Translations under genes and position numbers: made by a program
Sequence record: MW845758.1
Strand: one strand, 5' to 3'
DNA length: 64,000 nucleotides
In this document: positions 55,034 through 62,043 of the stretch, in pieces
Position numbering within the stretch: position 1 is the first letter of the stretch
Layout of the letters: every line of letters begins with the position of its first letter
Notes under the pieces: model-generated
Told to the model about the DNA's origin: nothing
Databases searched by the model: none
What the model saw: the letters and a program-made list of their open reading frames with translations, nothing else

Positions 55034-57142
55034 ATGATTTTACGTGAAAGTGATTGGGGCTTGCACCCGGGGTCGGTGATTCACGACACCACCAAAAACA
55101 GACACTTCCTGAAATTTGCCAATACGCTAATGGCGTTAGGTGTGCGTCACTACTACGTGCACTTGGCGCTGCACAATCCGTCGCTCAAAGACGTTGACCC
55201 GTTCGACCCCAACCTCACCATTATCCAGAAAGCGGATATCGTGCAGGAGTGTGCGGAGAACCCGTGGTATTACTTCCGTGAATGTTTACGCGTACCTGCT
55301 GATGGTACCACCGGGGTGCCATTTAAAATGGACCGCGGTAACTTTGCGCTGTATTGGATTTTCTTCAACAACATCGACGTCGCATTGGAGTTCCTGCGTC
55401 AGCACGGTAAGACCATCGGTGTGGCGTCACTGGAATCGTGGTTACTGAGGTTCTTGGAGAACTCCCGTACCATCCACGTAACCAAAGGGCCGGTACTGCG
55501 TGAGGAAACCATCACCACGCTAAAACGTCTACGTGATGGGTTACCGGACTTCCTCTGGCCAACGCACCCTGATGACCCAGACAACAAAGAAGCCTTTGCG
55601 TGTTTGGCCATGGGGAACAAACTGATTACCGCTATCGGTCAGAACGATGAGCAGTCTGCTAACGGTGTGGGTCGTGGACTCACTGCCGGTCGACTGTTAT
55701 CGGATGAAGGCCCGTTCACCAAAAACATCCAGCACATCCTGCCGGCTGCGTTGGGTTCGGGTACCGCAGCACGTCGTATCAACGAAGAGAACGGTGTACC
55801 GTACGGAAACGTGTTCGCCACAACGCCTGGGGACTTGGCGACCGAAGAAGGTCGTTTCATGTACCAGTTGATGACATCAGGGATTTCGTGGGATGAGCGT
55901 TATATCGATATCCCAACGCGCAAAGAACTGATTGATTTGATTCAGCTGAACTCCACGGCGAAGATTCCGCGTATCATGTTCTACGTGAAGTTCAACCACC
56001 AACAGTTGGGTACGACCGATGCCGAGCTGGCAACGATGATTGCCAACGCCACGGGTACACCTGACCAGATCCGTCGTGACTACGGGGGTCAGTGGACCAC
56101 CGGTGGTTTGAACAAACCGTATTCAGAAGAAGATGCGGCAAGGATGACCAAATCACGTCAGCGTGCCGAGTTCAAAGACATCTCTACATCAGGCTATGTC
56201 ACCGACTGGTATTACAAAGAAGATGAAATCGGTTCGAAGCTTCGGGCTCGACACATCATCGGTTTGGATACCTCGGAGGCCGTGGGTCGAGATGCCATCG
56301 CGATGTCTATCGTGAACTCAGAGACGGCAGAACTGGCCGGTAAACTCACGGTAAACGAAACAAACGTCATCGGCTTTGCCATTCACTTGGCGAATTTCAT
56401 GATAAAGTATGAGAACACAGTTTTAATTCTCGAAAGACGCAGCACCGGGTCGTCGGTCGCCGATGCAATTATCTTGCAGCTGCAATCGAAAATCCGTGAC
56501 TTGCACAGACGTCTGTATGTGCGTATTACCCAAGACTACAGTCGTAATGATGAGCTCTACAAAGAGTACCATCGTGGTCCGGGTAACTTCCCAGAGAAGT
56601 TCTGGGATAAGTTCCGTAAATACATTGGCTTCTCAACGGATCAGAATAAACGTCTTAAGCTTTACGGTGAGGTATTCACTATGGCTCTGCGTTTATCCGC
56701 ACACCTCATACGTTCCGGGGAGTTGATAGACCAGATTCTTAGCTTGGTTGAAAGAAGCGGTCGTATCGACCATCAACGTTCAGGGCACGATGACTTGGTA
56801 ATCTCTTGGTTGCTGGCTATGTGGCTGCTCATTTTCGGTAAGAATCTCAATCACTACGAGATATCCAATCACCGTTTAATGATCCGTAACAAAACCATGC
56901 TCGAAGGAGGTGATACCCAAGACGAAGAGTTGTTGGTGGAAGAAGAACAAAAACAACAACAGCTGATGGGTGAAATTGAAGCGGTCATTCGGGATATGCA
57001 GGGGGTTACATGTCCAGTGAAGACCATGCGCCTCAAAGGGCATCTTCAACATCTAGTCAGTCAACTCAACACTGATATGCGAAACGTCGCATCGATGGAA
57101 AGTCTAAAAGACTTGATCCAGCGGCAAAGGATGAATTCATGA
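55034..57142 (+). CDS. terL: Terminase large subunit (phiKZ gp25-like)
   Basis: Walker A LRQHGKT, Walker B LLSDEGPF, motif ATTPG, nuclease IIGLDTSEAVGRD and HDDLVISW. Confidence 0.9.
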   Translation: MILRESDWGLHPGSVIHDTTKNRHFLKFANTLMALGVRHYYVHLALHNPSLKDVDPFDPNLTIIQKADIVQECAENPWYYFRECLRVPADGTTGVPFKMDRGNFALYWIFFNNIDVALEFLRQHGKTIGVASLESWLLRFLENSRTIHVTKGPVLREETITTLKRLRDGLPDFLWPTHPDDPDNKEAFACLAMGNKLITAIGQNDEQSANGVGRGLTAGRLLSDEGPFTKNIQHILPAALGSGTAARRINEENGVPYGNVFATTPGDLATEEGRFMYQLMTSGISWDERYIDIPTRKELIDLIQLNSTAKIPRIMFYVKFNHQQLGTTDAELATMIANATGTPDQIRRDYGGQWTTGGLNKPYSEEDAARMTKSRQRAEFKDISTSGYVTDWYYKEDEIGSKLRARHIIGLDTSEAVGRDAIAMSIVNSETAELAGKLTVNETNVIGFAIHLANFMIKYENTVLILERRSTGSSVADAIILQLQSKIRDLHRRLYVRITQDYSRNDELYKEYHRGPGNFPEKFWDKFRKYIGFSTDQNKRLKLYGEVFTMALRLSAHLIRSGELIDQILSLVERSGRIDHQRSGHDDLVISWLLAMWLLIFGKNLNHYEISNHRLMIRNKTMLEGGDTQDEELLVEEEQKQQQLMGEIEAVIRDMQGVTCPVKTMRLKGHLQHLVSQLNTDMRNVASMESLKDLIQRQRMNS

Positions 57143-58810: not shown

Positions 58811-58829
58811 GATAGATATTATAAATGTG
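58811..58829 (+). promoter_or_regulatory. Putative early promoter GATAGATATTAT-N4-GTG
   Basis: Exact motif copy. Confidence 0.7.
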
Positions 58830-58873: not shown

Positions 58874-60007
58874 ATGCCCACTCACTATCGCAAGGTCGAT
58901 TGGTTCGAACACCTTCGTGCCCAAAAAATCGATTACGAAGAAGAAGTTAAACTGTGGATTAACCCCCACGGTTGCCTGTGCGAAATTAAAGAAATCGCTG
59001 GGGTCGTTGCACTGGTCAACGGGGAGCACCACGCTATCAGCAGTCCCTTTGCCCAGATGTTATTCGACGCCGGCATTACCGGTCCGGTGGTAATCCACTC
59101 GACAGAAAGTATCCCGCAAAATACCTCCCGTTGGTTAACTTGGTGGTTGAGCAGGAATCCCGCAGAAGACGACGAGTTGATTCGTACCGTCACCGTCTAC
59201 ACCTTCAGTTGCCGACCGACGAAGAGCTTGCCCTTCAAAGTCGAAACGATGGAACCGGTGGTGATGCGAGCGGGGGACGTCCGTTCTACTGTGGGAATGC
59301 AGTCCCGGAATTTCCATATCTCGATGTTCGTTGTCGAGCTGGCAAATGGGACGAAGTACAGTCTCGAGCCACAGCGTTATGTTCAGTGTCAAATCGTTGC
59401 CTGTACCAAATACGGCTACGTGTTGCGCTCGGACAATAACAACGTGTTCATCGCAGACAAAATCTCAAGGCACGTTCAAGCCCAACTCCAGAATGCAAAT
59501 CTGCGCAAGGATGACTTAGTTGGCACCCGTGTGAAAGTCCAGTTCACGATGTACACAGAAGGCAACCGCCTTTGCAATTACAAAAATCCCATCGTGCACC
59601 GGAGTAGCGCTCTCGATCAGTTGAGCGCTCCGACCGTCCCGTCATACGATGGCCCGTATCTCTTCGAGCCATTACCGCAAACTAACAATGCTACCCTGAC
59701 GTCCACGCGCTGTTCGCGTGCGGCGATTACCGTGGTGGACGGCGTTATTTACGGCCGGGACGTTGAGTCCGGCGTGACCCTATTCACTTTCCGCAAAGGT
59801 GTTGAACCCGGAGTATATGGGGCGGAACTGGGAATCGGTGGTCAGGTCGAACACTGGCGATTTGAATCTCCCTACTCTGTAGACGCACTTGACCCAGAAG
59901 GGTTTGTGCACGCACTCGAGCCGAATTTGTATTTCTCGACCGGGTACAGTTTACAGCGTATCGGACTGCATTTCGCTGACCACACAAAGCAGTCTCTCAT
60001 TGCATAG
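58874..60007 (+). CDS. Hypothetical protein, possible degenerate DNA-ligase-like OB domain
   Basis: 377-aa ORF with AAGGAG RBS. Confidence 0.75.
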   Translation: MPTHYRKVDWFEHLRAQKIDYEEEVKLWINPHGCLCEIKEIAGVVALVNGEHHAISSPFAQMLFDAGITGPVVIHSTESIPQNTSRWLTWWLSRNPAEDDELIRTVTVYTFSCRPTKSLPFKVETMEPVVMRAGDVRSTVGMQSRNFHISMFVVELANGTKYSLEPQRYVQCQIVACTKYGYVLRSDNNNVFIADKISRHVQAQLQNANLRKDDLVGTRVKVQFTMYTEGNRLCNYKNPIVHRSSALDQLSAPTVPSYDGPYLFEPLPQTNNATLTSTRCSRAAITVVDGVIYGRDVESGVTLFTFRKGVEPGVYGAELGIGGQVEHWRFESPYSVDALDPEGFVHALEPNLYFSTGYSLQRIGLHFADHTKQSLIA

Positions 60008-60521: not shown

Positions 60522-60533
60522 GGATAAGCATAC

Positions 60534-60600
60534 GCCGACGTGCCGTTTGGTGCGTCGGCACCCTTTCTACCCATAGGGTAGGATTGATTTATTTTTTTTT
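60534..60600 (+). terminator. Tandem hairpins and terminator closing the transcription unit before the gap
   Basis: GCCGACG..CGTCGGC, then CTACCC-ATA-GGGTAG followed by a long T-run. Confidence 0.65.
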
Positions 60601-60965
60601 GTCTAAAGTCCCTACTGGCACTAAGGATTGGTCATTTTTTGACCAGTTAATACACCCCTTTCAAAACCCTTCTAAAAAGCATTTTAAGCGGACTGATGTT
60701 GACCCGGTACATTCGGGTTCCTTACCCCCACTTATGGTCTCTACGAGCCGTACAGAGCGTCTGAGCACCCATCCCAATCCGAATTCGTGGATGCGATTTG
60801 CCGCTGGGGTGAAATCGGCGCGGTCGCCGCACGTTAAAAAATATATTAGCGCTTGCGCGTTTTAGGATACTCAGGATAGCTTAGCTTGAGAGGCGATCTA
60901 GTCTCTCGCTAAGTGGTTTGTTCTGTTCCCTTTGAATCTTAAATTTTAATTAAAAAATACTTATA

Positions 60966-60978
60966 AATCAATTACTTA
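60966..60978 (+). promoter_or_regulatory. IHF consensus site
   Basis: AATCAA-TTAC-TTA matches WATCAANNNNTTR exactly, with an upstream A/T tract (60938-60965). Confidence 0.55.
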
Positions 60979-61030
60979 CATCCCATTGCTAACCTACCGG
61001 TTAGCAACTGTTTAAATCTCTTCTATCTAC

Positions 61031-61200
61031 GCGTGTGCGCGCACACGCCATTTCCTACAGGATCTTTTTGTTTTATATATAAATATTATTTAATTATATT
61101 TATATAATTATAATAATAGATCATTATACCGCGCCCGCAAGCGCGTGATCCTTATTACTAGATCAATTTCAGGATTGAGAAGAATCGGGTGAGATCGATC
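61031..61200. other. Origin-like element: 18-bp palindrome, 48-nt pure A/T run and six GATC sites
   Basis: GCGTGTGCGCGCACACGC at 61031-61048; A/T-only 61071-61118; GATC at 61061, 61119, 61147, 61161, 61193 and 61197. Confidence 0.55.
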
Positions 61201-61567
61201 CCCAATCCCCTCCTCGGATTTTTTACAGGGTTGTGTAGTATTCTATGCAACTCCGATGTCTCGCCATGAACATCCGAGAGAGTTCCACACCCAACCGGTT
61301 AGCCCCCGGCGGTGTTCGCCGTAGTATCCTGAGTCGTGGTAAACACGTTTTGGCTCCAGTCCCTGTTCCGGACTCTGGCGGTGAGTTTCGGCTCACCGAA
61401 CTTTTCAAAACGTTTGAGTTATTACCTATGGCGAAAACGCATTTGGTTTCTCGAGCAAATCGGGAAACGTAACCAGACTAGCTAGCCAGCTAGTAATCTT
61501 CGACTGGACGATATTCAGCGAAGACTCAGACACGTGTATTCAGGTTACATGTGCCGGAAACCAGTTT

Positions 61568-61590
61568 GCCCCGCGTGCGGGGCCTTTTTC
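61568..61590 (+). terminator. Intrinsic terminator within the gene-free gap
   Basis: GCCCCGC-GT-GCGGGGC followed by CTTTTTC. Confidence 0.6.
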
Positions 61591-61591
61591 G

Positions 61592-62000
61592 AGTGTCTTC
61601 TCGCGAAGACATTGGAAAACGGTGTAATACGGCTTAGCCTTCGGGCAGAGTTCAGGTTCTTGTCTTACCCACCGTCGCTGCTAGGCTGAGCGGCATGCGG
61701 TGGCGGTTTGGGTTGCGGGGAGTTGTCCTGCCATTTGAATCTGACAAGTACCGTGGCAGTCTTGGGTGTGGTGAGGTTGGCGCGCGGCGTGAATACCCGC
61801 GTTCGGCATCTGCCGGTTGATTACACAACCGTGATGGATGGCTAGCCCACCACCCCAGGATGGGGCCAGATTGCATGGTGTGCCTTCTGAGGGGGAGGGC
61901 ACCACGGGGAGTGAGGTGATCACTGTCTTGGCGGCTCGGAAAGACGAGAGGGGTGGGTGTCCACGCTGCGAAGCGTCGATGCCTAGCTGATTATTTTTTA
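61592..62000 (+). ncRNA. Candidate large structured non-coding RNA (family unknown)
   Basis: No credible ORF; dense hairpins including cUUCGg and GCGA tetraloops, a nested multibranch helix and G-U pairing bias on the + strand. Confidence 0.45.
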
Positions 62001-62020
62001 CGGCAACCTTGGGTGTTATG
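61997..62020 (+). promoter_or_regulatory. Putative middle promoter TTTAC-N15-TATG
   Basis: Exact spacing match upstream of the gene at 62044. Confidence 0.6.
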
Positions 62021-62043
62021 TCTAAACCTCAAGGAATGTTACC

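Follow-up and report, generated by a model that had tools for sequence, protein, structure and literature searches.

A conserved A/T-rich, GATC-bracketed DNA element of SPN3US-like nucleus-forming jumbo phages as a candidate replication origin

Introduction

How does replication or packaging of the genome start inside a protein nucleus? The locus described here bears on this question. It lies in a stretch of 64,000 nucleotides (the window) that matches the last 64 kb of Erwinia phage pEa_SNUABM_11 (MW845758.1, 251,480 bp) at 100% identity, a window position being the record position minus 187,480. The phage belongs to the genus Wellingtonvirus and is an SPN3US-like, phiKZ-related nucleus-forming jumbo phage (chimallivirus). 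In the literature we found no mapped origin of replication and no mapped packaging-initiation (pac) site for phages that are phiKZ-like, SPN3US-like or otherwise nucleus-forming. A 2026 review of jumbo phages is silent on both.

The initial annotation of the window had drawn attention to a gene-free gap and interpreted a cluster of motifs within it as an oriC-like locus, either a replication origin or a pac site, possibly sensitive to Dam and SeqA, in a phage of the phiKZ kind. The gap (60522-62043, 1.5 kb) indeed holds no annotated gene in MW845758.1, and the relatives examined have a similar gap at the same place, with at most small hypothetical open reading frames (ORFs) and, in phages Kwan and Wellington, an inserted HNH endonuclease gene. 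Judging from the sequence, positions 61028-61200 are the conserved core of this region and certainly a functional DNA element, which acts in cis and is present once per genome in SPN3US-like nucleus-forming jumbo phages. Of the functions that such an element could have we rank first, tentatively, that of a phage-specific, Dam-sensitive replication origin, or at least of a DNA-unwinding element.

Results

Layout of the element

From left to right, the core and its immediate surroundings comprise the following features.

60880-60913: hairpin, 12-nt arms that are 83% complementary
60939-60978, + strand: 21-nt A/T tract, then the IHF-like motif AATCAATTACTTA (60966-60978)
60986-60994 and 60999-61007: dyad or hairpin with 9-bp arms and a 4-nt loop, located after the IHF-like motif and before the left GC block
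61028-61048: left GC block TACGCGTGTGCGCGCACACGC, 21 nt, perfectly alternating purine-pyrimidine, Z-DNA-prone
61031-61048: perfect 18-bp palindrome inside the left GC block
61049-61070, + strand: conserved motif CCATTTCCTACAGGATCTTTT, whose GATC at 61061 opens the oriC-13-mer-like GATCTTTTTGTTT
61071-61118: pure A/T run of 48 nt, candidate unwinding (or cleavage) region
61119-61122: GATC immediately to the right of the A/T run, in inverted orientation to the one at 61061
61129-61147: right GC block CCGCGCCCGCAAGCGCGTG, holding a 5-bp GC hairpin (61130-61147)
61143-61163, + strand: most conserved block GCGTGATCCTTATTACTAGAT, with two GATC (61147, 61161), candidate protein-binding site
61165-61217: variable hairpin and G-rich spacer, with the overlapping GATC pair GATCGATC at 61193-61200

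The hairpins, IHF consensus, inverted repeat, palindrome, A/T run and six GATC sites of the initial annotation are all present, each in its place. The six GATC (61061, 61119, 61147, 61161, 61193 and 61197) span 140 bp. The A/T run carries a near-perfect dyad of 31 bp (61076-61090 and 61092-61106), and the IHF-like motif, an exact match to the IHF consensus WATCAANNNNTTR, precedes the left GC block by ~50 bp and is not part of the stretch that GATC brackets. The 13-mer likeness noted at 61061 was recovered as a one-mismatch match to the oriC 13-mer consensus GATCTNTTNTTTT, which at this stringency has 4 matches in the window vs 1.1 expected; two of the one-mismatch 13-mers, at 61061 (+) and 61110-61122 (-), flank the A/T run and are inverted rather than in tandem.

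Genome-wide extremes coincide at the locus

Which of these features exceed chance? GATC is strongly avoided in the pEa_SNUABM_11 genome (340 observed vs 1289 expected; 0.26, ~4-fold depleted), and against this genome-wide depletion it is retained at the element, which is the densest GATC window in the 251 kb (6 per 150 bp; the runner-up has 3). The 48-nt A/T run is the longest of the genome, the runner-up being a run of 21 nt in the same gap, and it forms the least stable duplex genome-wide over both 40 and 60 bp (-32.4 kcal/mol vs a mean of -57.0 with a standard deviation of 3.4, that is ~7 standard deviations under the genome mean). The left GC block TACGCGTGTGCGCGCACACGC is the longest alternating purine-pyrimidine run of the genome (21 nt; runner-up 16).

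As an independent replicate we used the complete genome of SPN3US, taken from the public record. The homologous site has 8 GATC per 300 bp (runner-up 4), in a genome with 489 GATC observed vs 1207 expected (0.41); it has A/T runs of 54 and 35 nt, the longest elsewhere being 21, and an alternating run of 23 nt, the next longest being 16. It is also the least stable site, its 100-bp window having -87.9 vs -111.9 kcal/mol for the next best. In two genera, then, the genome-wide records for A/T-run length, GATC density and length of an alternating tract fall together within ~170 bp.

Other features do not stand out in this way. The exact IHF consensus is present at 60966-60978, as claimed, and its count is unremarkable on its own (4 in the window vs 1.9 expected; 11 of 100 shuffles reach 4). 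DnaA-box-like sequences occur at chance frequency across the window (52 vs 48.9 expected). The resemblance of the sequence at 61145 to a stretch of E. coli oriC exists as a local match to the oriC R 13-mer (GTGATC-CTTATTA(..)GATCG); since 3-20% of shuffles align as well, homology to oriC is unproven. A repeat, TGACCCGGT, was considered as a regulatory repeat and dropped because its copies sit in coding sequence on both strands. A search for a phage-encoded HU/IHF protein, limited to a crude motif search, found nothing.

The module order is conserved across genera

Conservation in relatives, a check proposed by the initial annotation, was seen for the core. We aligned seven phages from four genera (Wellingtonvirus, Erskinevirus, Machinavirus and Seoulvirus), between which the gap is alignable at two islands only, the core (~61014-61180) and a second element (~61910-62030). 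The core element is single-copy, and 32 phage records match it, none of which (0/32) annotates anything there. The pattern GCGTGATCYTTATTANNAGAT, taken from the most conserved block and searched in IMG/VR, was found in 9 contigs, every one a 236-248-kb jumbo-phage genome or fragment.

Across the four genera the order of the modules is fixed: GC block, GGATCTTTT, A/T run with dyad, GC block and the invariant GCGTGATCCTTATTA..AGAT. In full, the series reads A-tract plus IHF-like motif, hairpin, alternating GC block, CAGGATCTTTT, A/T run, second GC block, GCGTGATCCTTATTA(C/A)(G/T)AGAT, G-rich hairpin and ATTTTTTAC. How much of each module is kept differs. The hairpin at 60880 is conserved within the genus only, and the exact IHF consensus is confined to Wellingtonvirus; the other genera have, at the same relative position, an A-tract with (A/T)A(A/T)CAAnnACTTA, 1-2 mismatches away. 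The hairpin at 60986-61007 keeps its place, its sequence being unrelated from lineage to lineage (CTGAACCCC/GGGGTTCAG in pEa_SNUABM_6, GGGTC/GACCC in SPN3US), so that between the IHF-like motif and the left GC block the predicted structure is conserved and the sequence is not. Likewise the left GC block retains its alternation in all lineages despite differing sequence, and the right GC block alternates purine and pyrimidine in relatives (21 nt without a break in Proteus phage 7).

Sequence itself is kept on either side of the A/T run and at points within it. CAGGATCTTTT, in the motif at 61049-61070, is identical wherever it is covered in the alignment, and GCGTGATCCTTATTACTAGAT (61143-61163) is the largest block of invariant columns among the seven sequences; the invariant GCGTGATCCTTATTA(C/A)(G/T)AGAT is often followed by CGTGATCGG. 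The A/T run holds the invariant positions TAnnnATnATTnAAT. Across the lineages the run measures 48-100 bp and always has dyad symmetry. In relatives it is 50-100 bp of A/T-rich sequence, broken up by small dyads that have changed in a compensatory manner; Asesino has ATATCTTTAGATAT twice, SPN3US has AATACCTTTAGGTATT, and pEa_SNUABM_6 has both ATCCCGTAGGGAT and AACCCGTAGGGTT. The GATC at 61119 is shared by Wellingtonvirus, SPN3US, Proteus phage 7 and phiEaH2 and is absent in Asesino and the Machinavirus group. Further to the right, the region corresponding to 61165-61217 contains GGGGG...CCCCC hairpins and extra GATC in relatives. The GATC sites share nothing beyond GATC itself, their flanks being variable (RGATCB).

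A distant relative represented by a metagenomic contig (L030, 16380-16530), whose large terminase subunit (TerL) is 63% identical and whose G+C content is 42%, keeps the synteny, the gap and a ATTTTTTAC-N15-TATG site. Its element is reduced to CAATTACTTA, ~30 nt of A/T-rich sequence, ACGCGTAC and GACTTATTAAAGTCTAG. As this reduced element has no GATC cluster, this one example suggests that the GATC sites may be a later addition in the Dam-encoding lineage.

Could the locus nevertheless have no specific function, being an accident of base composition, the remains of a mobile element, or an artefact of sequencing or assembly? The region does draw assembly breakpoints, as described below, and a homing-endonuclease gene has inserted nearby in phages Kwan and Wellington. 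Against this stand the ordered modules, the invariant 21-mer and the genome-wide extremes, which recur in phages from four genera that were sequenced independently of one another, as well as in 9 contigs from metagenomes, and the keeping of GATC despite its strong avoidance elsewhere in the genome. Chance or artefact is very unlikely as the explanation, and we give the absence of function hardly any weight.

The phage encodes a Dam methylase

GATC is the target around which the initial annotation had built its idea of Dam and SeqA sensitivity, and the genome was found to encode the following protein.

Record positions 107486-108307 (outside the window): Dam-family DNA adenine methylase, annotated as hypothetical in MW845758.1

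The protein matches the Dam profiles PF02086 (E=1e-57) and TIGR00571 (259 bits vs a cut-off of 115) and has orthologues in SPN3US (gp105, the annotated counterpart) and in the SPFM phages. Its gene sits downstream of a middle/late-type promoter at record position 106382. As the phage encodes its own Dam, sensitivity of the element to Dam methylation is plausible, and within the phage nucleus this enzyme could serve whatever reads the GATC sites. No SeqA- or MutH-like protein was hit by phmmer at E<=10 in the pEa_SNUABM_11 or the SPN3US genome, which weakens the analogy with oriC. In a separate observation, the depletion of GATC (0.26 of expected; 0.41 in SPN3US) is curious in a phage with its own Dam.

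A possible site of packaging initiation

The same GATC sites bring to mind the pac site of phage P1, which has groups of 4 and 3 GATC hexamers ~95 bp apart, an IHF site, central cleavage and regulation by Dam (PMC10028697; P1 record annotation and sequence). By analogy, terminase, perhaps with a small subunit, would bind the GATC flanks and make the first headful cut in or near the A/T run, and cutting would be permitted only after methylation by the phage Dam, delaying packaging until late in infection. For SPN3US-like phages, headful packaging and circular permutation of the genome have been reported (PMC5690319; PMC6256631), and as in P1 there would be a single site in a headful phage with its own Dam, which here is apparently expressed from a middle/late-type promoter (that at record position 106382). 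As in P1 (PMC10028697), most relatives have two GATC groups ~95-100 bp apart together with an IHF-type motif. GATC are found on both sides of the A/T region in SPN3US, Kwan and Asesino; in SPN3US they lie at -198, -194, -185 and -126, followed by ~100 bp of A/T-rich sequence with no GATC and then by GATC at -25, +4, +18 and +24. Finally, terL ends 3.9 kb upstream, in conserved synteny.

Unlike P1, which has a defined hexamer (TGATCA/G), the flanks of the element have GATC alone in common, and the left cluster of pEa_SNUABM_11 consists of just one site. In P1 the IHF site is between the two clusters, whereas the IHF-like motif of the element lies outside them. The P1 site lies within pacA; the element is intergenic and separated from terL by four genes, one of which is on the opposite strand. 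Z-prone blocks and a pure A/T run have no known role in pac recognition.

Could the ends of database records betray a physical end at this site? The records of many relatives begin or end near the gap. In SPFM2 (LR535921.1) the end and the start of the record overlap by 17 nt within the palindrome AATACCTTTAGGTATT, and the record of Proteus phage 7 starts in the same palindrome. As the starts in the A/T run break inside this small palindrome, with a 17-nt overlap of end and start, they are artefact-like; we reject them as physical DNA ends and regard them as assembly breaks, and the A/T-run element appears to be a hotspot of assembly breakpoints. Base 1 of the relatives was set by alignment to SPN3US and is not a mapped end (PMC5690319; PMC6256631). 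As a side observation, several independently assembled records of the SPN3US group start inside the A/T run or at its edge, namely those of SPFM2, SEGD1, EC001, SPFM16, SPFM17 and Proteus phage 7. Weighing both sides, we regard a P1-type pac site as a serious alternative and an unlikely one.

Predicted promoters and a structured non-coding unit to the right of the core

To the right of the core, the gap contains a predicted transcription unit.

61218-61247, + strand: promoter-like P1, ATTTTTTAC-N17-TATG, directed away from the A/T run (predicted)
61245-61930, + strand: structured non-coding transcription unit between P1 and P2
61568-61592: intrinsic terminator within the structured non-coding unit
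61925-61992, + strand: second cross-genus element (~70 nt), upstream of P2
61993-62001 and 62017-62020, + strand: promoter-like P2 (ATTTTTTAC and TATG, respectively), ahead of the first gene after the gap (62044) (predicted)

Two classes of promoter-like sequence were distinguished. Class 2 (TTTTTAC-N13-17-TATG) has ~20 copies genome-wide, often right after terminator hairpins; in the window its sites include 8481, 17818, 61220, 61995 and 63422, and exact ATTTTTTAC occurs twice in the window, both copies being in the gap. The middle/late promoters of phiKZ are described as A/T-rich at -24 with TATG at the start site (PMC7598289), and by this description class 2, P1 included, fits middle/late-type promoters. 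Class 1, with the consensus T..A(A/T)6..AGATAGATATTATCnnnGTGA, has 26 copies genome-wide, all on the + strand and scoring 16-52 bits with a 56-nt weight matrix built from 18 sites of 33-52 bits; its cores in the window are at 2707, 12220, 44164, 44928 and 58813, and SPN3US shares the core. By the published description (PMC7598289) class 1 fits early promoters, used by the virion polymerase. No early-class promoter was detected on either strand of the gap, where the best score is -1.0 bit. We considered the A/T run itself as an early promoter, as it contains TAAATATTAT, one mismatch from the core TAGATATTAT, but the 56-nt matrix gives it -1 bit.

The unit downstream of P1 behaves as a structured RNA. 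Its indels do not come in multiples of three, and among three lineages double compensatory changes are seen at 18 of the 193 predicted pairs, for example from CACGTGT-ATTCAGGTT-ACATGTG to CACTCG-GATTCAGGTT-CGAGTG. It has no Rfam match, and no tRNAs or known RNA families were found in the gap. The gap also holds ORFs of 93 and 75 amino acids, neither with a Pfam match; a coding role of the latter was rejected, as its reading frame is not conserved. In phages Kwan and Wellington an HNH homing-endonuclease gene is inserted in the structured non-coding region (Kwan contig L002, 3949-4458, corresponding to window position ~61895); the insertion is absent from pEa_SNUABM_11 and from the contigs L010, L014 and L016. 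The second cross-genus element (61925-61992) is the most widely conserved non-coding sequence of the region, ~50 phage records matching it. Its consensus is ATCTTGGCGGCTCGGAAAGACGAGAGGGG...CG(C/T)TGnGAA(G/A)CG, with a small hairpin that shows the compensatory change CGCT/AGCG to CGTT/AACG, and it may either form the 3' end of the RNA upstream or serve in the control of P2.

Does the element simply control P1? In that case it would be the upstream control region of P1, perhaps at a boundary between late and early gene blocks, in which the invariant 21-mer as activator site, a tract that is A/T-rich and UP-like or curved, and GATC sites sensitive to Dam would time the structured non-coding RNA. 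P1 follows the invariant block at a distance of 55 nt and is kept in the same lineages, the invariant 21-mer being 84-104 nt upstream of the P1 TATG, and the RNA encoded downstream is structured and conserved. Promoters under Dam control have well-known precedents, such as those of Mu mom and pap. However, ~20 other promoters of this class in the genome lack any comparable structure upstream, and 48-100 bp of pure A/T, two Z-prone blocks and 6-8 GATC far exceed the UP elements and activator sites that have been described. In pEa_SNUABM_6 the P1 transcript would run for only ~55 nt before a terminator, yet the upstream element is fully kept. We therefore judge control of P1 to be improbable as the function of the element.

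Neighboring genes

The surroundings of the gap to the left contain the following features.

55034-57142: TerL, ending 3.9 kb upstream of the element with four genes between
58874-60007, + strand: protein of 377 amino acids, called hypothetical in all relatives
60530-60583: two terminator-like hairpins (GCCGACG...CGTCGGC, and TTCTACCCATAGGGTAGGA plus a T-run) that end the upstream operon
60587-60600: A/T tract directly after the two hairpins

From terL to the gap the genes encode proteins of 84, 443 (opposite strand), 377 and 167 amino acids, in conserved order, and the synteny between TerL and the gap is kept in SPN3US and in the relative with the 63%-identical TerL. On the 3' side the gap is followed by small genes and then by a cluster of 13 tRNA genes. 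The AlphaFold model of the 377-amino-acid protein has a pLDDT (predicted local distance difference test) of 86 and matches ATP-dependent DNA ligases with a Foldseek probability of 1.0, the matches being the ligases of T4, Chlorella virus and ASFV (African swine fever virus) and human LIG1. An invariant N-terminal K-x-D-W could be its adenylation motif. The early-type promoter at 58813 precedes this gene. The protein of 167 amino acids beside the gap was considered as a small terminase subunit or an initiator and dropped, having only 8 homologues, a low-confidence model (pLDDT 63) and no fold match.

Discussion

Based on these data we rank a phage-specific origin first, since unwinding potential is the most extreme and the most conserved property of the element, since GATC-rich unwinding regions are known in origins of Dam-containing hosts, and since the context is related to replication, with a ligase-like early gene on one side and a middle-type promoter transcribing away on the other. 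A pure A/T run of 48-100 bp suits an unwinding element, and the P1 pac site, the one GATC-type pac site that is well described, has no such run (at most 70% A/T per 40 bp at its center, as compared to 100% at the center of the element). Of the initial proposal, an origin or pac site in a phiKZ-like phage, what stands is a single-copy element of SPN3US-like phages, conserved in four genera, extreme in its composition and accompanied by the phage's own Dam; the DnaA boxes, a convincing likeness to oriC and SeqA or MutH are missing from the picture.

How might such an origin work? A phage-encoded factor would bind on both sides, to the invariant GCGTGATCCTTATTA..AGAT block (right) and to the CAGGATCTTTT motif (left), perhaps assisted by an IHF-like bend at 60966-60978. 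Negative supercoiling, part of which may stem from the transcription leaving P1, would melt the pure A/T run; the flanking G+C-rich blocks would confine the bubble, and the dyad within the run could extrude as hairpins and keep the strands apart. The GATC sites that bracket and follow the run would be substrates of the phage Dam, and their methylation state could license or time firing. Host DnaA would not be used.

Several observations weigh against an origin. The DnaA box TTATNCACA has no match in 60522-62043 at <=1 mismatch, which extends the observation of the initial annotation that a perfect box is lacking, and across the lineages compared the element contains no repeated binding motif or iterons beyond GATC. 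No candidate initiator was identified, the 167-amino-acid protein encoded beside the gap having given a low-confidence model and no fold match. Cumulative GC skew, which the initial annotation had proposed as a guide, rises nearly monotonically, dips only where genes switch strand and has no inflection at the locus; as the skew tracks gene orientation, most genes being on the + strand, it is uninformative about the origin and we rejected it as an indicator. No recognized promoter reads into the A/T run, and for this reason priming from an R-loop in the manner of T4 and T7 is unsupported. The closeness of terL, 3.9 kb upstream in conserved synteny, fits a pac site equally well, and the two GATC clusters flanking ~100 bp resemble the P1 pac site. 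In addition, such phages may begin replication by recombination, with no fixed origin. Taking all this into account, we still place a Dam-sensitive origin or unwinding element ahead of the other functions considered, at a confidence that stays tentative.

Going further, it is conceivable, though we consider it doubtful, that this is the first identifiable origin of a nucleus-forming phage and has a new architecture, in which an A/T run with an extrudable dyad is held between Z-prone clamps and GATC sites read via the phage Dam provide a private, host-independent methylation clock inside the protein nucleus. Whichever function applies, the element offers a sharply defined target, conserved, present once per genome, ~170 bp long and containing an invariant 21-mer, and it connects three previously unlinked observations: the avoidance of GATC, the phage Dam and the one protected GATC cluster. 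If it is indeed an origin or a pac site, it would be useful for engineering these phages and for phagemid-like vectors.

How does the element compare with known systems? The left half of E. coli oriC has A/T-rich unwinding units that begin with GATC, as do the 13-mer-like sequences at the element, and GATC is dense in both (11 per 232 bp in oriC, 6 per 140 bp in the element). An IHF-type motif is close by in both, and as at oriC, where the gidA promoter transcribes away, a predicted promoter directs transcription away from the candidate unwinding region. Unlike oriC, the element lacks DnaA boxes. Its A/T run consists of nothing but A/T, exceeds that of oriC 2-4 times in length and is clamped by alternating purine-pyrimidine GC blocks that oriC does not have, and phmmer found no SeqA homologue in the phage. 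Given the absence of DnaA boxes and the weak resemblance to the oriC R 13-mer, the element is not an oriC-type origin in the strict sense. These phages replicate inside a protein shell, which is reported to keep out host nucleases and to admit the replication and transcription machinery (bioRxiv 10.1101/2024.03.27.586873; 10.64898/2025.12.19.695335). That host DnaA and SeqA are likewise kept out is our assumption.

Phage and plasmid origins offer further parallels. The primary origin of T7 and oriF and oriG of T4 consist of a phage promoter and an adjacent A/T-rich unwinding region and are independent of DnaA; there synthesis is primed by a transcript that the promoter sends into the A/T region. 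The element resembles them in having a middle-type phage promoter, P1, ~100 bp from its A/T run, and differs in that this only recognizable promoter reads away. The plasmid origin oriR of P1 has GATC repeats in an A/T-rich segment and requires Dam methylation, so that GATC in the unwinding region of a methylation-dependent origin has a precedent; its DnaA boxes and RepA iterons have no counterpart in the element. Unwinding elements, clusters of GATC, IHF-type motifs and dyads, of which the element is composed, are all of known kinds, and what is new is their combination and setting: pure A/T between Z-prone blocks, free of initiator boxes, in a phage with a private Dam and a protein nucleus.

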